Sequence record: NC_061445.1
DNA: 64,000 nucleotides
Strand: one strand, 5' to 3'
Below, piece by piece: positions 11,066-55,720 of the stretch (position 1 is its first letter; each line of letters starts with the position of its first letter). A model generated the notes under the pieces. It did not search any database. It was not told the DNA's origin and saw nothing but the letters and a program-made list of their open reading frames with translations. Position numbers and translations under genes: made by a program.

Positions 11066-12121
11066 TTAGCAATCACAACCCACTGAATCAAAATCAAGTT
11101 TCAGGCCAGGATAGAGTTCATTGAACTCCGACAGCGCAACGTTGAAACCAGCAGCGTTAACGTGACCGTCACCACCTTGTGCGCGAGCAATGGCGCGAGC
11201 ACTACCTGCATCACCATCTGAGTAACCACGAGAGCGACAGCTAACGTAAACACGATCTGGGTCACGATGACCTTTACGCACTAACAGCACTGTCTGGAAG
11301 TGATGGTAGTTTTCGTAGACGTATGTGCCTGTTTCAGACGCGATACCCTTGTCGCACGGAACAACAGCGTGTTTCACCGGAACCAGATGATTGGGTTCAG
11401 AGAAGTAGCTGTTATCTGCGATCATCTGGCGAATCTTTTCGTCACGGATTTCAATGTTCTTGAATCCCTGCTCGATGATTTCTTCAACATTACCAGTCAG
11501 GATGATCTTGTGTGCAGCGCGAACGGTAGGAGGCATTTCAGTGTAGATATGACCACACTTCTCAACCTCTTTGAATACCGTGTCAACGTAACCTTCGTAG
11601 AATGCGAACGCACGTTTGTTTGTGCGAATCCACAGGTCACGGTCAGACACCAGCTGGGCGATGCGAATGATGTTGTCAGTGCAAGCGTACTGGTGTTGCT
11701 GGAAGTCAGACACATGCGCCATGTACGCAAGCAACGCACCACTGCCACCAGCGGCAAACGTTAACTGACTCGGGCTGACGTCAAGGGCAGCACACTCTTT
11801 CGCGTACAGAGCAGCATCGCGGCAGTCATGGTGGTCAAGCACCTTGAAGTTACCGTGATAGCGACTGGTGAACAGTGCCATTTGACGCTCGGATAAAGAG
11901 AAGTCAACTACAACAACGCGTTTATACAGCGCATCTTTACCGCCTTCGAGTCCGGGGATGTCTTCGATTCGGACATAATCAGCGGTAACTATATCCCCTT
12001 GGTCTTGTGCATAGACGGCAGGGAGGAAGTGGATCGTATCGTTGGGATACGCAAGTGCTGTAATGGCAGCGGCGAAACTACCATCAGCACATCCTTGATG
12101 ATAAACAACAAGTGTAGTCAT
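11066..12121 (-). CDS. DHH/DHHA1-family phosphoesterase (351 aa)
   Basis: YHQGCADG, VVVDFS, LDHH, D.DLW and C-terminal GDGHVNAAGF motifs. Confidence 0.85.
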   Translation of the reverse strand: MTTLVVYHQGCADGSFAAAITALAYPNDTIHFLPAVYAQDQGDIVTADYVRIEDIPGLEGGKDALYKRVVVVDFSLSERQMALFTSRYHGNFKVLDHHDCRDAALYAKECAALDVSPSQLTFAAGGSGALLAYMAHVSDFQQHQYACTDNIIRIAQLVSDRDLWIRTNKRAFAFYEGYVDTVFKEVEKCGHIYTEMPPTVRAAHKIILTGNVEEIIEQGFKNIEIRDEKIRQMIADNSYFSEPNHLVPVKHAVVPCDKGIASETGTYVYENYHHFQTVLLVRKGHRDPDRVYVSCRSRGYSDGDAGSARAIARAQGGDGHVNAAGFNVALSEFNELYPGLKLDFDSVGCDC

Positions 12122-12123
12122 GA

Positions 12124-12993
12124 CTAAACCCAGTGGTTATTAGAATTGTTTCCAGATTGGGCACCACGCGCATGAGCGATCATTTGGCGTAGCCCCTCCA
12201 ACGTCTGCTCCAGAGTCACTCGGTAGTTCTCGTCGGCAACGGTCTCACCGTAATGGAAAGCCATAGTGAATAGCTGCCACTCGTTTGATTGGCGCAAGGC
12301 TTGCATCTTACGGTAGAGGTTTTCACGGCGCTCACGAGCACGTAACAGGCGCTGAATTAAATTAAGAGGTTCGTGAGATTTTGCACACAATTCGATATGA
12401 ATTAGGTCAAGACCTTCGTAGTCCAGACGAGCAACAGCCTGCTTTGCATTCAGGAACAACTCACGGCGGCGAAGCTGTTCATCGTCGGACAGATTGCGGC
12501 ATTTATCAGGATGCGTCATACGCGCGATTGCTTTGTAGATCGCCTTGCATTTACGAATAAGTTCAGCGCGGGACCAGCGTTCGTGCTCTGCCTGTGTATC
12601 GGCATCAGCTTCGTTATCACGCGTTTCGTGGTCAGTGTCTTCCTGCTCGAAGTTATCGTCCAGCAGCTTCTGCAAATCTTCCGCATTGGCCTTATCTTCA
12701 AGGTCATCGGACTCTGCCATGTTGATGAGCAACGCTTGCAGTTCTGCGTTAGCTCGCTCAATCTCCATGATTAGAGGTTTGTTGTTTTTGTTCAGCTTGT
12801 CAACGATTTTGGTAACACGCTCGCAGTCAGCACTGTAGCGCAGTTCAAGCGCCGCTACTTCTTCCAGGATTTCTTCGAGTGTCTCACCGCCCTCAGATTC
12901 AAGGGCTTCAAACTCGGCTTCTTCGTCAAATGCGACATCCGAGATGATCAGTGCGGTTTGTTGAGGGATAACCATCAACTGAGTATTTGTCAT
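12124..12993 (-). CDS. Coiled-coil protein with J-domain-like (HPD) module (289 aa)
   Basis: KAIYKAIARMTHPDK helix-HPD signature after an acidic coiled coil. Confidence 0.7.
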   Translation of the reverse strand: MTNTQLMVIPQQTALIISDVAFDEEAEFEALESEGGETLEEILEEVAALELRYSADCERVTKIVDKLNKNNKPLIMEIERANAELQALLINMAESDDLEDKANAEDLQKLLDDNFEQEDTDHETRDNEADADTQAEHERWSRAELIRKCKAIYKAIARMTHPDKCRNLSDDEQLRRRELFLNAKQAVARLDYEGLDLIHIELCAKSHEPLNLIQRLLRARERRENLYRKMQALRQSNEWQLFTMAFHYGETVADENYRVTLEQTLEGLRQMIAHARGAQSGNNSNNHWV

Positions 12994-13184
12994 GGGCGAG
13001 TCAGCTCCGAAAGTGGTTTAGCTACCAGCTCTGCAATGCGCTGCGGGCACTGTGGGTTGCGCTTCAAGTTCTTGTGCAACCAATGCAAGTTGTTACCTGA
13101 CGCAGACACCTCAGCACGGAAGCTAGGCAGTTTAAGTGCGTCACGATGTTCGGCCAACAGTGCATTCAGTTCATTCAGTAACAT
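12990..13184 (-). CDS. Hypothetical protein (64 aa)
   Basis: Fits the operon packing (4-nt overlap); AAGG RBS. Confidence 0.6.
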   Translation of the reverse strand: MLLNELNALLAEHRDALKLPSFRAEVSASGNNLHWLHKNLKRNPQCPQRIAELVAKPLSELTRP

Positions 13185-13193
13185 TGTTTTTCC

Positions 13194-13814
13194 TTAAAGA
13201 GAAGAAGTCATGAGTTCGAGAACGTTTGAAACTACATGCGCAGGACCGATTGAAATTCCAGTGTGCGCTTGCAGATGAATACGTTTGGTGAAAAGCTCTA
13301 ACGGGTCAGGACCGCCACCAGTAACTACGATGCGAGGTATCTTAGGGAACATCTCAAGGATATCACGCAGTCGTTCAATCTTATAGCTTGTGCTGTCCAT
13401 CGTTACGTTGGTCAACACTAACAATGACGGTCGCTTGCTTTTGAGTTGTTCGTAGTCGAAGCGATCACCATACAGCGTTACCCAGCGAGGCTTGAGTGCA
13501 GTTGCCTCGCTGTCCTCTACAGCAGCATTGAAGATATTCAGCGCTGCCATTTTCGCACGGTAGTCATTCGGAAAACTACTAATCACCGTAATGCGTGGGT
13601 CCATTGCGAATGGGTTTGTAATCATCTTGGCTAAGTGTTGAAGTTGTTTTGTCTTCGAGAACACTCGGCCTTTAAAGTAAGGAGACAGCGGCTTATAGTC
13701 CTGCGCTGCCTCTACTACGTCGAAGGTTTCACGTTTGCCAAACAGCAGCTGGGGGTCTACACCAAGCGTCTGCATTTGCTTTGCCGCAGCAGGTTCAAAA
13801 TCGAATGTTAACAC
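13194..13814 (-). CDS. Hypothetical protein (206 aa), alpha/beta fold, possibly a degenerate P-loop/loader-like domain
   Basis: GTG start with GGAGGG RBS; alternating strand/helix pattern (RITVISS, SLLVLTN, RIVVTGG); no intact Walker A. Confidence 0.55.
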   Translation of the reverse strand: MLTFDFEPAAAKQMQTLGVDPQLLFGKRETFDVVEAAQDYKPLSPYFKGRVFSKTKQLQHLAKMITNPFAMDPRITVISSFPNDYRAKMAALNIFNAAVEDSEATALKPRWVTLYGDRFDYEQLKSKRPSLLVLTNVTMDSTSYKIERLRDILEMFPKIPRIVVTGGGPDPLELFTKRIHLQAHTGISIGPAHVVSNVLELMTSSL

Positions 13815-13831
13815 AATACCCTCCGTTATTC

Positions 13832-14170
13832 TTATTGGGTATTTACAGAAGCCAGAACTTCTTGTACTACCTTAAATTTGACTTCCATGCGCTTAAAATC
13901 AGGCAAAGAGCGATGCCCATATCCTGGGTACAGTTCAGCGAATTTCGAATCGACAGATTGTGGGACGATCTCGGCCTGAATAGACTCAAACAAGACTACG
14001 TTCGGTAAATGGAGAACACCAGCAACGACAAAATCCTCAATCACAGGTTTAGCCTTAGAGTCGCGTTCGTAGCGCTTGCACATATTGTTCATGTGCGCTT
14101 CGATAGCATCGACAACTCTGCGAGCCAAAACATCTGGCAGATTAAGATCATAGACAGTCGAATATTGCAT
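13832..14170 (-). CDS. Hypothetical protein (112 aa)
   Basis: AGGAG RBS; operon packing. Confidence 0.7.
   Translation of the reverse strand: MQYSTVYDLNLPDVLARRVVDAIEAHMNNMCKRYERDSKAKPVIEDFVVAGVLHLPNVVLFESIQAEIVPQSVDSKFAELYPGYGHRSLPDFKRMEVKFKVVQEVLASVNTQ
13840..13848 (-). promoter_or_regulatory. Class-M motif CTGTAAATA
   Basis: Exact copy 26 nt upstream of the 13814 start. Confidence 0.6.
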
Positions 14171-14186
14171 GGTGTTCTCCTAGTTA

Positions 14187-14555
14187 TTACATCAGTGGCA
14201 TTTGCGGATCGACATACGTGTATTCAAACACGATGTTCCAACCAGATGCAGTTTGTTTGTTTTCGTGGAAGCGGAATCCATAGAACATCAGAATACCGCG
14301 ATGACCAGCAAGCGTAGGCTCGTACTCAGTGTAAGCTGTTTCGAGTTTCATCTTGGCTGCGATGCTTTCTGACCAGGCATCGAAATCGAACGGACCCTCA
14401 GGAACTTCCCAAGAGACTGTATGCTTAGGCCAGTGAGAGGCTTGCATGTCAGTGTCTTTAGAAATCCAGTCAAGGTGATTCAGGTCCATGTGATACGCGA
14501 CAGCGCGAGGGATGCCGTGCTCGGTCATGTAACGCTGCAATTGATCAAGACGCAT
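14187..14555 (-). CDS. Hypothetical protein (122 aa)
   Basis: AAGGA RBS; operon packing. Confidence 0.7.
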   Translation of the reverse strand: MRLDQLQRYMTEHGIPRAVAYHMDLNHLDWISKDTDMQASHWPKHTVSWEVPEGPFDFDAWSESIAAKMKLETAYTEYEPTLAGHRGILMFYGFRFHENKQTASGWNIVFEYTYVDPQMPLM

Positions 14556-14892
14556 TGCATGTTTCCTTAATGTTGCGTGGGAATGCAGTCACATTGATGA
14601 GCGTTGTGTCTGCTTGGTGTTCGTGCGGCATACTTTCATGCGACACAATCCAAACATTTGTCACTTCAAGTTTGTTGCGCAGTGCAAGCAACAGGTGAGA
14701 AGCAATCGAAATAGGATGGACATAGTTGGACACAGTGATAGAGACAGCAACTGCCTCAGCCTCATGTGTCTTTTCTTTTCCATCCCATAGTTCAACGCTC
14801 ATGGACTGACGGGCGGCCTCACTCTTTAGCGTGTCCATATCGAGAGTGTGGTGTAAACGCTCTTTCATTTTAAACTCCGTATAGTCTGACAA
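14545..14892 (-). CDS. Hypothetical protein (115 aa, TTG start uncertain)
   Basis: Fills the gap between neighbours; start codon uncertain. Confidence 0.55.
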   Translation of the reverse strand: MSDYTEFKMKERLHHTLDMDTLKSEAARQSMSVELWDGKEKTHEAEAVAVSITVSNYVHPISIASHLLLALRNKLEVTNVWIVSHESMPHEHQADTTLINVTAFPRNIKETCNAS

Positions 14893-14908
14893 AGAGACAG
14901 TCTATAAA

Positions 14909-15400
14909 TTAGAGAGCGAGACCCTTCAGGAGCAGACGGGCAGCAGCCGTGAACTGTTTCTTTTTCAGATCAGGCAACTTGTTGTAACGGTCGATGATGT
15001 CAGCAAGACCGATATCGTTTTCATCATCGATCACGTTTTCTTCATCGTCCACATAGCGACCTTCTTGACCAGCAACACCAGTATCACCCTTCTGCCAGTT
15101 AGCTTTAGTAACAGTCAACAGGAAGCTGCCACGGCATTCTTCTTTATGGCCGCCGATAGTGACAGGCAAACGAACCATAGTGTGAGTGAGGTCTGCAATG
15201 CGCTGCACAGCAACGCCATCAGGATAGGAGGCAAACACATTAGACAGATCGATATCTGCCATATTGCCCGGCGCAGGTGACTTAAGGACGAAATTCACAC
15301 GGAATGTTTCGCCGCCATTAACATCATACTGTCCGTCCATGAGGACTTTCTCATTAGCACGGAGCGTATTGACAACAACTGTCTGAACAGGATCAAACAT
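14909..15400 (-). CDS. Hypothetical protein (163 aa)
   Basis: GAGG RBS; operon packing. Confidence 0.7.
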   Translation of the reverse strand: MFDPVQTVVVNTLRANEKVLMDGQYDVNGGETFRVNFVLKSPAPGNMADIDLSNVFASYPDGVAVQRIADLTHTMVRLPVTIGGHKEECRGSFLLTVTKANWQKGDTGVAGQEGRYVDDEENVIDDENDIGLADIIDRYNKLPDLKKKQFTAAARLLLKGLAL

Positions 15401-15402
15401 GA

Positions 15403-15885
15403 TTACTTCCTCAGGTAGTCCGCCAGCATAGCAATGTGATTGCTAATCATTTTCTTCTGGTCAGGGGTGAGTTGACTGTACGGCGGCAGGTCAGGATAGA
15501 CGCCCTGCATAGCCAGATAGGTTGTCTGTATGTCTGCCTCTGGGCGCTTGCCGACACAGAACACACAGTCTTTGAATATATACGAAGGCGGGCAACCGAA
15601 TGGCGCTTCGATAACTTCAACCCTATCGCAAGACACGAGCATCAAGCAGTTACCGAAAGTTTTGATCACGTCTTTCAGCCCAACAACTTTCAGCTTCTCG
15701 TAAGTAGCATCAATCAAGCTGGTGGCTGCACCCTCGATAGAAACGTTAACTGTCACGTCAAGTGTTGCTGTAGCAGCACCAAGAACAGATTGGTTAACGA
15801 GGACGATGCCCTCCTCCGTGAGGGCACGACGCAGTATAGCTTCGAAGCCACTCTGCGGTTTAGGTTTTACTTCATGAAGATTCAT
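15403..15885 (-). CDS. Hypothetical protein (160 aa)
   Basis: TGATG coupling to the helicase stop. Confidence 0.7.
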   Translation of the reverse strand: MNLHEVKPKPQSGFEAILRRALTEEGIVLVNQSVLGAATATLDVTVNVSIEGAATSLIDATYEKLKVVGLKDVIKTFGNCLMLVSCDRVEVIEAPFGCPPSYIFKDCVFCVGKRPEADIQTTYLAMQGVYPDLPPYSQLTPDQKKMISNHIAMLADYLRK

Positions 15886-17486
15886 CAGAATCGCCTCATG
15901 CCTAAGTTAGAAGGCTGGCCTTTGACTTTCGCTTCCGGTTCGAAGTAGTCAGGCAGCTCACTATCAAGCGCCTCACTTCTCGACACAACTCCCATCCAGT
16001 CACGCAGTTTCTTCGGTGTACGCTTCGCTTTCGCATACCCGAACTTCCAGCACATCTTGAGAACGGAACGAGCACACTGCATCGAGCGATCCATCTTCGG
16101 ATCAATGAACATACGAATAACAGGTGTGCGCTTGTTTTCCATCGGCGTCAGAATACGACACGATTCCTGTTTCCAGTTCGGTTCGTTATTCATCGGCATG
16201 ATGTAGTACAGCGTGTCCCACTTAGGAACGTTCAGGCCGCGCTGCATCAGCTTGCGCATACCCACAACGCAGCGTATCTTACCTGCTCGCGCTGCATCAA
16301 TGATAGGCTTACGCTTCTTCGCTTCTTTCGCACCGCCAAGGAACACAGCAGCAACTTCATCCATGTAATGCTCATTGATACGCTGCACAAGACGTCTGGC
16401 CTGATCAGTGAACATGATTGGGATTGCGATACTTCGACCAGCATCGAGGTCTTTGATAATCCATTCAAAGATCTTATCGTTACGGTCTGGATGGTTCGCA
16501 AGGAACTTACAGAATCGCACCCAACCACTTTTGTTGTTATAGTTCGCTTTCGACTGCACTCGGTTCGAAGTCTTATGCAACGTTACTTTCGGCACAAGCT
16601 CCTCAACGAACGCTTCGGCAATCACAGGCCCGAAGATAGATTCAATCAGGTAGTGACGACCGTCTTTACGCTTCGGTGTTGCAGTCAGACCAAAACGATA
16701 CTTCATTTTGAGCGATGCCAGTACGCGGCTATAACAGCTTGCGTTACCAGCATGACACTCATCGACGAACAGCGTACCGTAGTTCTCGTTCAGCAACTTG
16801 AGTCGCTTCTTCGAGTTCTTACTGTCAGAGATCAGAGACTGATAGGTCACGAGGATAATCTGGAAGTTTTTATAATCGTCCAGAGTCTTCGGGAACCCGT
16901 ACAGCTTCTTACCGTGCTTCTCTTCCAGCTCAGGCAAGTTCGTCATCGCTTCGATAGTCTCTAAGAAACCATCAAGGAAGTCTTTCTGGTCTGCCATAAT
17001 GACAGTGCGGAAACCAGAGTGACATGCACCAGCAGTACCGATAACAGTCTTACCAGAACGAGGCGGTGCTTTGAATACACCACACAGTTCGCCGAACATC
17101 TTCTCGAACGGTTCTTCCTGATACTCACGCAGCTTACCAGTGAACTTCACTTTATAATCATACGGCACACGGCTCGTACCGTTGACGAACTTCACTTCTT
17201 TCAGGCTTAGCCCTGCTGTCTTTTCGAAGCGGTGCATCTCACCATACGGGATTGACACATAACGCTTACCCTTAATCTCAGAGTATTTGGCCAGCACGGT
17301 TATATCAAGCAGACCGCCCTTAGAACATTGACGACATTCTTCGGACGGTCGTATAGAACGATACTCACAGTTCTTGCACACGGCATTTTCGAACTCATAG
17401 TGAGTCATCTTCTTGATGATGTTGTCAGCGTCTACAACCTTAACTGGAATGTGCAGACGGCTATCGACCAATACTTTGGCAGTCAC
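15885..17486 (-). CDS. SF2 DNA helicase, UvsW-like (533 aa)
   Basis: APPRSGKT (I), FVDECH (II), GLTATP (III), QRGLNVP (V); N-terminal CxxC...CxxC. Confidence 0.88.
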   Translation of the reverse strand: MTAKVLVDSRLHIPVKVVDADNIIKKMTHYEFENAVCKNCEYRSIRPSEECRQCSKGGLLDITVLAKYSEIKGKRYVSIPYGEMHRFEKTAGLSLKEVKFVNGTSRVPYDYKVKFTGKLREYQEEPFEKMFGELCGVFKAPPRSGKTVIGTAGACHSGFRTVIMADQKDFLDGFLETIEAMTNLPELEEKHGKKLYGFPKTLDDYKNFQIILVTYQSLISDSKNSKKRLKLLNENYGTLFVDECHAGNASCYSRVLASLKMKYRFGLTATPKRKDGRHYLIESIFGPVIAEAFVEELVPKVTLHKTSNRVQSKANYNNKSGWVRFCKFLANHPDRNDKIFEWIIKDLDAGRSIAIPIMFTDQARRLVQRINEHYMDEVAAVFLGGAKEAKKRKPIIDAARAGKIRCVVGMRKLMQRGLNVPKWDTLYYIMPMNNEPNWKQESCRILTPMENKRTPVIRMFIDPKMDRSMQCARSVLKMCWKFGYAKAKRTPKKLRDWMGVVSRSEALDSELPDYFEPEAKVKGQPSNLGMRRF

Positions 17487-17488
17487 AT

Positions 17489-18034
17489 CTATTTCCTTGA
17501 GTTCGGGAGACCGTATTCACGCTGATTGATAAGGCTCATCGTATCAACGAGTGCGCGGTAAGCAAACCCACACTTGTCAATGTCCTTGATATACAGGTCA
17601 AGCTCTTCCTTGAGCATCCCCAGCTGATCAGCGTAACGATAATACTCGGCCATAATGTTTCTGACACAGCGCTCACGTTCTTTCGCAGCGCCGACGGCTT
17701 TCAGATCTTTCGCATACGTGACCGAGGCGTAGTCCTGAAATCTCTCCAGCATATCATTTAACAGTTTTGAGGCTGTATGGATGTGCGTCAGGATCTCAGT
17801 CATACGGCTTCGGTACGATTGATCTTGAATTATCGACTCTGCAACCTTGTTCAGAGAGTTAGGGTCAGAGACATTGAGCGTTCTGACCTTACGCATCTTG
17901 AACAGCTTACGCGCTTCATCCTGCAACTCTGCCAAAGGCTGCTGGAAGATATCGTTGGTCTTATAGATATCGCGTAGCTTTTTGTAGCGCTTGTCGTTCT
18001 TGACCTTTAATCGGATTCGCTTTAGGTCGTCCAT
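17489..18034 (-). CDS. All-helical protein (181 aa), possible UvsY-like recombination mediator
   Basis: Adjacent to the UvsW-like helicase; C-terminal LYIKDIDKCGFAYRALVD resembles the UvsY C-terminus as I recall it. Confidence 0.4.
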   Translation of the reverse strand: MDDLKRIRLKVKNDKRYKKLRDIYKTNDIFQQPLAELQDEARKLFKMRKVRTLNVSDPNSLNKVAESIIQDQSYRSRMTEILTHIHTASKLLNDMLERFQDYASVTYAKDLKAVGAAKERERCVRNIMAEYYRYADQLGMLKEELDLYIKDIDKCGFAYRALVDTMSLINQREYGLPNSRK

Positions 18035-54322: not shown

Positions 54323-54358
54323 TGTACTTTGCCCTTTAGTCTAATGCGTTACATCAGG

Positions 54359-54367
54359 TATTTACAG
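54359..54367 (-). promoter_or_regulatory. Class-M motif CTGTAAATA
   Basis: Intergenic, 37 nt upstream of dnaX. Confidence 0.7.
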
Positions 54368-54376
54368 ATTTTAGAC

Positions 54377-54412
54377 AAAAAGAAAGGACCACATCCAAAA
54401 TGGAGGGTCCTT
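54377..54412 (-). terminator. Rho-independent terminator
   Basis: AAGGACC...TCCA-TTT-TGGA...GGTCCTT followed by TCTTTTT. Confidence 0.65.
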
Positions 54413-54465
54413 ATGGTGTTACAATAAGTTTGGGATGGTAACGCATCGGCAGTGGGCGCTGTCGA

Positions 54466-54663
54466 TTAGGCAAAGCACATTTCCCAGCGCGGTACAACGC
54501 GGAAGAAGTGCTTAAAGTTGGACGGTGGATTCTTCTTGATTGACTCAAGTTTCTGTTCCACTACGTCATAATCTTTTATGCCACTCTCAACGGTGTGAGT
54601 GGTGAACGTACCGTCAGCCTGAATCAAATCGGCGACAACACGGTAGCTTGGTCTACGAAGCAT
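54466..54663 (-). CDS. Hypothetical protein (65 aa)
   Basis: AGGAG RBS; CTGTAAACA variant at 54703-54711. Confidence 0.65.
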   Translation of the reverse strand: MLRRPSYRVVADLIQADGTFTTHTVESGIKDYDVVEQKLESIKKNPPSNFKHFFRVVPRWEMCFA

Positions 54664-54757
54664 CTATTCTCCTGTGCTAAAATTTCTCGTTCTTCTGAAT
54701 TATGTTTACAGTTTACCGCGAGTAGTCACATAAGAATAAAGTCAGACAAATCTTAAA

Positions 54758-55087
54758 ACTCCAATAGGCTCTCAGTAGAAAACTTATTGGAGTCCACCCT
54801 GACAAGATGACGGTCCTGTCAAGGTTTTCTCCCCGTGCTATTCAATGCACCAGCACGGTAGCGCTCGCGGTCTTACGCCCTTTGTGGCAGCGAACATTTC
54901 GGCAGGTAGCGTGGTTCGCAGCCCTAGGCAGCCGCTTTCGGCCATTAGCGATAACGCGGTGTTACGCTACTTGGCCTAGGGTGACTCTGGGCCGAGTCTG
55001 TACAAAAAAGAGTTCGGCCTATCCCCAAATTCGGCAAAAGAAATAAGCCGAACTAAACAGTCAGCGCAAACTCCGTATGCACTGTTT
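54758..55087 (-). ncRNA. Candidate structured non-coding RNA (~330 nt), family not recognised
   Basis: Gene-free gap with seven consecutive stems, several with minus-strand G:U pairs; CTAATTT motif just upstream; last stem followed by TTTT. Confidence 0.6.
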
Positions 55088-55098
55088 TGTACTGTCAT

Positions 55099-55105
55099 AA
55101 ATTAG
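55099..55105 (-). promoter_or_regulatory. Class-L motif CTAATTT heading the candidate ncRNA
   Basis: Between the HAD gene stop and the first hairpin; no RBS-bearing ORF follows. Confidence 0.55.
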
Positions 55106-55132
55106 AAACATCCTGTAATATTCAGACAATTC

Positions 55133-55720
55133 TTAGTTCAACATTGGCGTTAGATTTTCTAAGAAGTGTTTGCGATCAAACGACGAAATTCTGTGAGGGT
55201 GATCGACGTGCATGTTCCAGCCTTTGTTGAACAGCAGGATATTGCGCGGCAACGATACGACCGTACCGACACGGGTGAACGAATCACGCACGGCAGTTAC
55301 CGGATTGTCATCGACGAGAATCCAAGTACCTTCACCGTAAAGCTCGTTCAGGAAATCAATCTTGTTCGGATGCTCACGGCTATCGAGGCAGTGAATGTGA
55401 TCGAACAATGAGAGATGCTTGGACAGAGACTTGCGTGTGTAGCGTTCACCTTTTTCGTGATAGCCACGATGCGTACAAATGCCAGCACTGAATCCATCAC
55501 GCACCAGCATCGCTACTGTCTGGATGAAGTAGTCACGCATGTTGGCTTTGAGCATGAAGCTACCATCAGCCAGCATATCGACAAACGGTTGCTTGCCGTT
55601 CTCTGGAGTGATGTACGTGTCGGTGCCTGGGTAGATTCCGAAGTTCATCAGATAACACAACATGAAATTGTGGGTATCGAATGCTGTGTCATCCATGTCA
55701 AAGAAAATGTGTTTGATCAT
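55133..55720 (-). CDS. HAD-superfamily phosphatase / nucleotidase-like (195 aa)
   Basis: IFFDMDDT (motif I), ICTHRG (II), K..F, LVDDNP (IV). Confidence 0.8.
   Translation of the reverse strand: MIKHIFFDMDDTAFDTHNFMLCYLMNFGIYPGTDTYITPENGKQPFVDMLADGSFMLKANMRDYFIQTVAMLVRDGFSAGICTHRGYHEKGERYTRKSLSKHLSLFDHIHCLDSREHPNKIDFLNELYGEGTWILVDDNPVTAVRDSFTRVGTVVSLPRNILLFNKGWNMHVDHPHRISSFDRKHFLENLTPMLN

Follow-up and report, generated by a model that had tools for sequence, protein, structure and literature searches.

What is encoded in the gene-free gap at positions 54664-55132 (469 nucleotides, nt) of the 64,000-nt stretch of sequence record NC_061445.1 (the whole of which is hereafter called the window), a gap that is bounded by minus-strand open reading frames (ORFs) at 54466-54663 and 55133-55720 and lies in a part of the window where every listed ORF of more than 110 codons is found on the minus strand? 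An earlier note on this DNA, drawn from its letters alone, had placed here a novel structured phage RNA of about 330 nt with its own late-type promoter. The gap itself is real. The window belongs to Erwinia phage pEa_SNUABM_3 (genus Alexandravirus), a jumbo phage of 266 kb to which 54600-55200 shows 100% identity; matches to this region at 72-100% identity are present in 46 phage records (all Erwinia or Dickeya jumbo phages), and the gap is left without annotation in the deposited pEa_SNUABM_3 record as well as in all the related records (46). We are highly confident that it encodes a real and new structured non-coding RNA; the structured, non-coding nature of this RNA, whose predicted length is about 330-340 nt, is borne out by the fold z-score, by strong covariation and by the lack of a conserved ORF, each of which is set out below.

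The minus-strand RNA of this region folds at -167 kcal/mol as compared to -128 ± 5.7 for its shuffles (z = -6.78, equalled by none of 100 shuffles), and the plus-strand fold of the same region reaches z = -5.41. Across three clades the fold z-scores were -6.8 (pEa_SNUABM_3), -8.0 (pEa_SNUABM_5) and -5.2 (the Salmondvirus JA11/JA29 type). An alignment of 18 homologous gaps (alignment A1: Alexandravirus, Sasquatchvirus Y3 and the unclassified pEa_SNUABM_25 group) revealed invariant blocks interspersed with variable stems, and RNAalifold derived from it 107 pairs, 32 of which carry compensatory double changes. Once an outer helix that never varies was dropped and a pseudoknot added, the refined model held 100 pairs, with 96.2% of the cells paired and double changes at 34 of the 100 pairs among the 18 relatives; in the control, where the 3' partners were slid by 1-3 columns, only 33-43% of the cells were paired and 4-12 pairs showed double changes. 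The covariation that the earlier note had named as a check on its proposal is therefore present, and strong, among homologues from related phages. Since the covariation-supported model contains 222 G:U cells versus 8 A:C cells, and since the alignment fold energy is better for the minus-strand RNA (-111.8) than for the opposite strand (-73.9), we consider the minus strand to be the functional one, as had been argued from the same asymmetry in the pEa_SNUABM_3 letters.

The part of the RNA that is common to all clades is a 3' core of about 135 nt, in which the elements follow one another in a constant order: UAAGAC comes first, then the H-type pseudoknot and GGAG, next a hairpin whose stem varies, and last a terminal hairpin whose arms, ACUCCAA/UUGGAGU, are invariant. 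In a model-guided alignment of 23 sequences from five genera, 16 of the 28 nested pairs of this core show double changes (none of 500 shuffles reaches any of five measures), and the helix of the terminal hairpin is 100% paired, with 7 of its 11 pairs never varying. As the MAFFT alignment and the covariance-model alignment both misplace the pseudoknot by two columns in the Rivs- and Salmondvirus-like rows, it was counted by a separate, anchored script, which recovered 11-13 base pairs in 18 of 18 distinct versions (a score reached by at most 2% of shuffles). The loop lengths are those of an H-type pseudoknot: loop 1 spans 0-6 nt, loop 2 spans 0-3 nt and loop 3 (54839-54846 in pEa_SNUABM_3) spans 6-9 nt and is A/U-rich. 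Helices X and Y change in sequence between clades and keep their complementarity (helix X and helix Y, respectively: GCGCUA/UGGUGC and CCGUGC/GCACGG in pEa_SNUABM_3; ACGUU/GACGU and CCUGCACU/AGUGCAGG in Y3; GGGCGCC/GGCGCCU and CCCUC/GAGGG in pEa_SNUABM_5; GGUGCG/CGCACU and CCCGC/GCGGG in JA11; GGUGUG/CGCACC and CCCAC/GUGGG in locus L049), with double changes at 5 of the 6 pairs of helix Y.

Set against these comparisons, the seven stems listed in the earlier note are each a canonical pairing in the window sequence, but four of them (55055-61/55081-87, 55029-35/55047-53, 54990-95/55014-19 and 54922-29/54974-81) are not the pairings that relatives keep, or are kept without covariation; the first of these overlaps and competes with the covarying helix 55062-68/55078-84, and the last is only 53% paired among relatives. 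The stem 54833-40/54851-58 is real, yet it is only one helix of the pseudoknot, whose second helix (54859-64/54847-52) had been missed. The TTTT described after the last stem holds for pEa_SNUABM_3, where UUUU comes after the terminal hairpin in the RNA, and gives way to TTTAAG (UUUAAG) in most relatives.

A small protein-coding gene can be ruled out, as neither ORF of the gap keeps its start, frame or length in the relatives. The ATG at 55098 that opens a 40-codon ORF is found only in pEa_SNUABM_3 (the relatives have ATA, GTA, GTT, TTA or TCC), seven relatives have a stretch here whose length cannot be divided by three, and many relatives break the frame; the 79-codon ORF on the plus strand runs into early stops or frameshifting length changes in most relatives, and the longest ORF in the gap differs in strand and position from phage to phage. 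A conserved ORF from the ATG at 55098, which the earlier note had itself named as the alternative to an RNA, is thus not what the relatives show.

Within the known RNA families the element finds no place. Rfam 15, whose 4227 models include RNase P, 6S, SRP, tmRNA, group I/II introns, riboswitches, GOLLD, ROOL and pRNA, gave no match at the gathering score in the whole window and none at E ≤ 10 in 54500-55300, and in five divergent loci it gave one noise match only, which falls outside the RNA; ARAGORN called no transfer RNA (tRNA) or transfer-messenger RNA (tmRNA) genes in the window. The earlier reading that no tRNA, tmRNA, RNase P or group I/II intron signature is visible is consistent with both searches. 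A group I intron is ruled out on two grounds, namely that the ORFs on either side are intact, separate genes that have a start and a stop of their own in every relative, and that no Rfam intron model matches the core even at E ≤ 10. Mimicry of 16S ribosomal RNA was rejected as well: UUGUACA, ACACCGC and CCGUCA correspond to neighbouring segments within E. coli 16S positions 1390-1408 (rrsH), but the overall sharing of 7-mers is at chance level, the same window coverage was attained by 491 of 500 shuffles, a comparison limited to invariant unpaired positions gave nothing, and the matches are lost in pEa_SNUABM_5 and L049. In the literature we found no description of this RNA in these phages; a bulk catalogue built on IMG/VR lists 8495 short candidate RNAs of 29-151 nt (PMC10690425), and unnamed fragments of this RNA may already be among them.

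With the clamp-loader gene as a guide, distant loci were located and their syntenic regions compared. Divergent homologues were recovered in pEa_SNUABM_5 (Rivsvirus; nhmmer aligns model positions 213-378, E = 5e-13) and in Yoloswag, and a shorter version of about 215 nt, lacking hairpins A and B (see the feature table below), in the Dickeya phages JA11 and JA29 (Salmondvirus), so that the family spans five genera (Alexandra-, Sasquatch-, Rivs-, Yoloswag- and Salmondvirus). A search with a covariance model of the 3' core gave a single copy in each phage (75-145 bits) and no match in PaBG or in the Alcaligenes phage Afa-NA1; PaBG has no gap at the syntenic position and no homologue of the RNA, and the syntenic gap of Afa-NA1 likewise holds no homologue. 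A pattern of the motifs common to all clades was further run on IMG/VR, on metagenome contigs and on one genome per bacterial or archaeal species. In IMG/VR it returned this phage group only, together with two uncultivated relatives of the Rivs- and Salmondvirus types and chance matches; among the matches listed for the metagenome contigs were the same two uncultivated relatives, and the third set, of bacterial and archaeal genomes, yielded nothing real. On these sequence comparisons we rate the RNA as the founder of a new family, of no assignable known kind and hitherto restricted to a single group of Erwinia/Dickeya jumbo phages.

Two side observations concern these distant loci. Within their RNA regions, Yoloswag (gp204, L039:560-724) and pEa_SNUABM_5 (pEaSNUABM5_00214, on the opposite strand, L035:1743-1868) each carry the annotation of a small hypothetical protein; because both fall in covarying helices and are without counterpart in relatives, they are probably spurious gene calls. 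In the gap of Afa-NA1 (L036:2440-2923), a 15-nt unit (CAACTGATACATGAG, with variants) occurs about eight times at intervals, and these repeats look like iterons or a row of promoters.

Features of the predicted RNA, in 5' to 3' order on the minus strand, and of its flanks (window coordinates)
Feature	Coordinates	Strand	Remarks
CTAATTT(A) box, CTAATTTA	55098-55105	minus	CTAATTW in all genera; 6-8 nt before the first helix
Non-coding RNA body, about 338 nt	54755-55092	minus	predicted; ends placed by the first helix and by the U-run after the last hairpin
5' domain	55000-55092	minus	P1 (55085-55092 with 55000-55007) encloses hairpins A and B
Hairpin A	55062-55084	minus	covarying stem; 100% paired, double changes at 3 of 7 pairs
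Hairpin B (55011-55054) with U-run	55004-55054	minus	long, G+C-rich; compensatory changes at several pairs
Hairpin C, GACUC/GAGUC	54983-54998	minus	GGCC in loop; in the longest invariant block, UUUUUUGUAC-N-GACUCGGC
Hairpin with 14-nt loop	54946-54969	minus	invariant GUAACACCGCG in loop; covarying stem, AGC/GCU to AGU/ACU in Y3
Short hairpin GGCCG-AAAG-CGGCU	54930-54943	minus
Three-helix domain	54877-54929	minus	closed by 54925-54929 with 54877-54881; stacked inner helices
Invariant UAAGAC	54870-54875	minus	shortly 5' of the pseudoknot; all genera
H-type pseudoknot	54833-54864	minus	helix X 54859-54864 with 54847-54852; helix Y 54853-54858 with 54833-54838
GGAG	54829-54832	minus	directly 3' of the pseudoknot; all genera, GGGA in Y3
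Hairpin Z	54796-54825	minus	variable, covarying stem; double changes at 8 of 11 pairs
Terminal hairpin, ACUCCAA/UUGGAGU	54756-54795	minus	invariant arms; loop ending AG
Variant ACTGTAAAC of the recurrent promoter-like box	54699-54712	minus	before the 65-codon gene; boundary feature outside the RNA
Upstream neighbour, 195 aa (amino acids)	55133-55720	minus	phrog_415, E = 1.2e-13; weak likeness to the polynucleotide kinase/phosphatase family
Downstream neighbour, 65 aa	54466-54663	minus	function unassigned; precedes the clamp-loader gene
Clamp loader, 424 aa	53048-54322	minus	downstream neighbour

The 5' domain is tied together by P1, a helix that its first eight bases can form with the U-run and GUAC downstream of hairpin B; the P1 sequence is invariant within the Alexandravirus clade, and at the same position Rivsvirus and Yoloswag carry different yet complementary sequences (by eye). 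The loop of hairpin A (55069-55077) holds a conserved A-N-GGAGU that resembles a ribosome-binding site and is kept in Rivsvirus and Yoloswag. An intercistronic site elsewhere in the window (14873-14912, minus strand) has TCTAATTTAT and, 23 nt further on, ATACGGAGTTT, both of which also occur at the start of the RNA. At the intercistronic site the TAA is a stop codon and the GGAG serves the next gene as its ribosome-binding site, so that what the hairpin A loop reproduces is a genuine ribosome-binding region. We treat the likeness between this site and the RNA start as a coincidence or a distant one. Hairpin B with the U-run after it (6-12 U in relatives) is terminator-like, yet the U-run is able to pair in P1, and the terminator scan did not call hairpin B, whose loop exceeds 8 nt. 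The same T-run (columns 134-145 of alignment A1, window 55004-55009) ranges from 6 to 12 T among otherwise near-identical phages, a variation in length that looks like homopolymer slippage.

In the central part, the loop motif GUAACACCGCG recurs with one mismatch at 54866-54876, so that the 11-mer GUAA(C/G)ACCGCG occurs twice within the RNA. One phage, pEp_SNUABM_52 (L016), has a tandem duplication of the 10-nt motif GTAACACCGC inside the hairpin loop (A1 columns 186-200), and the loop therefore tolerates a second copy of the invariant motif. Within the three-helix domain, 7-9 sequences carry double changes at several pairs of the helices in A1 columns 233-237/297-301, 239-241/288-290 and 243-248/280-285, and the loop keeps an invariant GCUACCUG that is found in Rivsvirus and Yoloswag too. 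The CCGUCA loop of hairpin Z (54808-54813) is invariant in the Alexandra/Sasquatch clade and reads CCGACA in the Salmondvirus-like clade; Rivsvirus and Yoloswag place a hairpin with the loop ACCGUCAU elsewhere.

As regards the start of transcription, the CTAATTW box is conserved upstream of the RNA with constant spacing in each of the five genera (overlapping the last codons of the upstream gene in the Salmondvirus-like clade), and because of this conservation we argue that a signal is present at this place. The scan for sigma-70-type promoters called nothing on the minus strand here, and the box is, by its conservation, a probable -10-like start signal. The qualifier 'late-type' in the earlier note is not borne out, and a late promoter was rejected: CTAATTWA occurs at 3 sites in the window versus 2.2 expected, and is thus not recurrent, and it differs from the box that is. 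The latter, WCTGTAAA (mostly TCTGTAAATA), is present at 12 window sites versus 4.6 expected (none of 100 shuffles reaches 12), all on the minus, i.e. coding, strand (13842, 23110, 23164, 24372, 32303, 39648, 42188, 51272, 54361, 54705, 59355 and 61165); they are located 20-60 nt upstream of start codons, in many cases after a hairpin and a T-run. The phages of this group reportedly code for one or more sigma-70-like factors of their own and depend on the host core polymerase (PMC7412058). The WCTGTAAA box is probably the promoter read with the phage's own sigma factor.

Downstream of the RNA, a TCTGTAAATA-type box is also found 3' of it in JA11 and L049. The terminator tool called a canonical intrinsic terminator of L049 at 1024-1049, after which come TCTGTAAATA and the clamp-loader gene; JA11 has the same layout by eye, its loop being too long for the tool. 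Because the Salmondvirus-like clade thus has a terminator and a separate box after the RNA, we regard the RNA as a unit of its own rather than as a riboswitch leader of the clamp-loader gene. As an observation apart, the TCTGTAAATA box precedes the clamp loader in JA11, L049 and Afa-NA1.

How, then, might such an RNA act? The best explanation overall, which we put forward tentatively and at just short of an even chance, is a stand-alone, non-coding, structured minus-strand RNA of about 340 nt that acts in trans on a conserved partner. Its transcription would start just after the conserved CTAATTW box, it would work in trans as a folded RNA, and its invariant unpaired motifs (GUAA(C/G)ACCGCG twice, GCUACC, UAAGAC, GGAG and the CCGNCA loop) would be the contact surfaces for a conserved macromolecular partner, the RNA being either a component of a ribonucleoprotein or a decoy for a phage or host protein. 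Partner binding is favoured because the stems vary while the invariant nucleotides concentrate in loops and junctions, because the 11-mer is repeated, and because the terminal stem is paired yet invariant in sequence, a pattern that is typical of RNAs recognised by a conserved partner. The packaging RNA, sponge and decoy of the earlier note are candidate functions. The mechanism itself (trans-acting partner binding, as a ribonucleoprotein or as a decoy RNA) we hold, from the pattern of conservation, to be possible, with the balance tilting somewhat against it. Several points weigh against this explanation. The transcript ends, the promoter and the discrete transcript are predictions, the binding partner is putative, and complements of the invariant loops occur at chance level in the window (which is a quarter of the genome). 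The CTAATTW box fits neither the sigma-70 scan nor the recurrent phage box. Moreover, the only strong terminator-like element in the Alexandravirus clade (hairpin B with its U6-12) lies inside the RNA, which could accordingly be two units, and Rivsvirus has no promoter box between the RNA and the next ORF, a layout that leaves room for co-transcription.

The internal terminator-like element lends itself to a division of the locus into two: hairpins A and B, which would end at the U-run and form either a small RNA (about 90 nt) or the 3' end of the operon upstream, and an RNA of about 245 nt that would start near 54998. Hairpin B with U6-12 has the anatomy of an intrinsic terminator whose U-run varies freely in length, the Salmondvirus-like version does without hairpins A and B, and the invariant block after the U-run is partly like the recurrent promoter box (by eye); however, no exact copy of that box follows the U-run, in three clades, which differ in sequence here, P1 can join the 5' end to the U-run and the adjoining downstream bases, and CTAATTW lies before hairpin A in one clade and immediately before the core in another, which is what a single promoter for a single RNA would give. 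We judge two units to be decidedly unlikely. The same hairpin would have another meaning if the RNA were a processive antiterminator acting in cis, which (in the manner of the HK022 put RNA or the Bacillus EAR) would be made where the replication-gene cluster begins, stay with the polymerase that made it and allow it to read through the terminators preceding the downstream promoter boxes of the replication cluster. For such a role speak the position of the RNA directly upstream of the clamp-loader cluster in all five genera, the terminators 3' of the RNA and the hairpin and T-run elements before TCTGTAAATA boxes, the terminator-like hairpin B within it, the co-orientation of the window genes, the dependence of this phage group on the host core polymerase with its own sigma factors (PMC7412058) and the phage precedent of the HK022 put RNA (PMC9378689). 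Yet the RNA is 3-5 times larger than the put RNA and has neither sequence nor Rfam likeness to it, each downstream unit has a promoter-like box of its own, and the gene order is conserved even in PaBG, which lacks the RNA, so that position is weak evidence; we consider antitermination unlikely.

Control in cis has also to be weighed in the form of a riboswitch or attenuator leader that senses a ligand or a protein and governs the downstream replication genes. An H-type pseudoknot followed immediately by GGAG recalls the small pseudoknot aptamers, the location upstream of the clamp-loader genes would suit a leader, and so would the Rivsvirus layout described above. We nevertheless find this quite improbable, given the terminator and new promoter box that intervene between RNA and gene in L049 and JA11, the roughly 85 nt with a promoter-like box that separate the two in the window, and a next gene that varies by clade (65 aa, 119 aa, or the clamp loader directly); nor is there a Rfam riboswitch match, or a start codon at working distance from the GGAG, where the short frame is not kept (by eye). 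By analogy with ColE1 RNA II or the R-loops of T4, the element might finally serve replication itself, as a structured pre-primer at an origin or as a structure in single-stranded DNA, for which its location inside the replication module, the conserved A+T-rich block after the RNA and the eight or so iteron-like repeats in the same gap of Afa-NA1 could be cited. The cumulative GC skew does not, however, change direction near 55 kb, R-loop priming needs neither a pseudoknot nor invariant loops, and Afa-NA1 is devoid of an RNA homologue, which makes a replication element very improbable. The trans-acting, partner-binding RNA thus stays the reading that we prefer.

Large, well-folded, covarying RNAs without known relatives are rare, and most of those that have been studied carry out basic functions. 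The closest in general character are GOLLD and ROOL, which are likewise phage-borne, several hundred nt long, multi-domain, strongly covarying, without coding capacity and without an assigned function; the present RNA differs from them in having no Rfam match, a smaller size (about 340 nt), another architecture, a location that is not beside tRNA genes and a very narrow distribution. RNA-only particles are reported for other large phage RNAs, and the palindromes GGCC and CGCG in the invariant loops could conceivably mediate self-association here. With the HK022 put RNA and EAR it shares the context only (a structured RNA near a promoter that heads a co-oriented block of phage genes with terminators), as it is much larger and has no sequence or model likeness to them. 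The CsrB/RsmB sponges of Erwinia and related hosts are similar in size range, GGA motifs and repeated short motifs, but they have many repeated GGA hairpins and no pseudoknot core, whereas this RNA, which has no Rfam match, conserves three GGA, only one of them in a hairpin loop (hairpin A), with one single-stranded GGAG and one paired; it does not match a sponge of this type. Nor does it match a phi29-type packaging RNA (pRNA), which resembles it as a phage-encoded structured RNA with its own promoter that forms part of a machine: the present RNA has no Rfam match and is located within the replication module rather than at an end of the genome, and its sole complementary loop pair (ACGG/CCGU, between the hairpin A loop and the CCGUCA loop) loses complementarity in Yoloswag. 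ColE1 RNA II, in turn, is comparable as a long structured transcript beside replication functions that is followed by an A+T-rich stretch, but here the GC skew gives no evidence of an origin, no antisense partner was seen and the pseudoknot core is unlike it.

The comparative evidence is unusually clean (five phage genera and a defined pseudoknot core in the replication module), the architecture is non-trivial, and the host phages are jumbo phages under development against fire blight and soft rot; the family is, so far, a narrow one. The RNA offers a small, concrete object for studies of expression and structure, and these genomes can be annotated with the covariance model. There is, furthermore, a low probability that it is a dedicated RNA subunit of the phage replication or transcription machinery (reprogramming the host polymerase in cis or, as a structured pre-primer, firing an origin next to the clamp-loader genes), or an RNA-only particle self-assembled via its palindromic loops; if true, any of these would represent a new functional class of phage RNA.

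With regard to the neighbouring genes, the 195-aa protein encoded upstream is annotated as a phosphatase in pEa_SNUABM_5; it has no Pfam match, and no solved relative of it was found. Between the 65-codon gene and the clamp-loader gene (54323-54465) a hairpin with a T-run is followed by TCTGTAAATA, an arrangement from which the 65-codon gene appears to be a one-gene unit of its own. Farther along the window, the cumulative GC skew peaks near 14-16 kb, with a sign change at about 12000-18000 that could mark a replication landmark or a shift in gene content.

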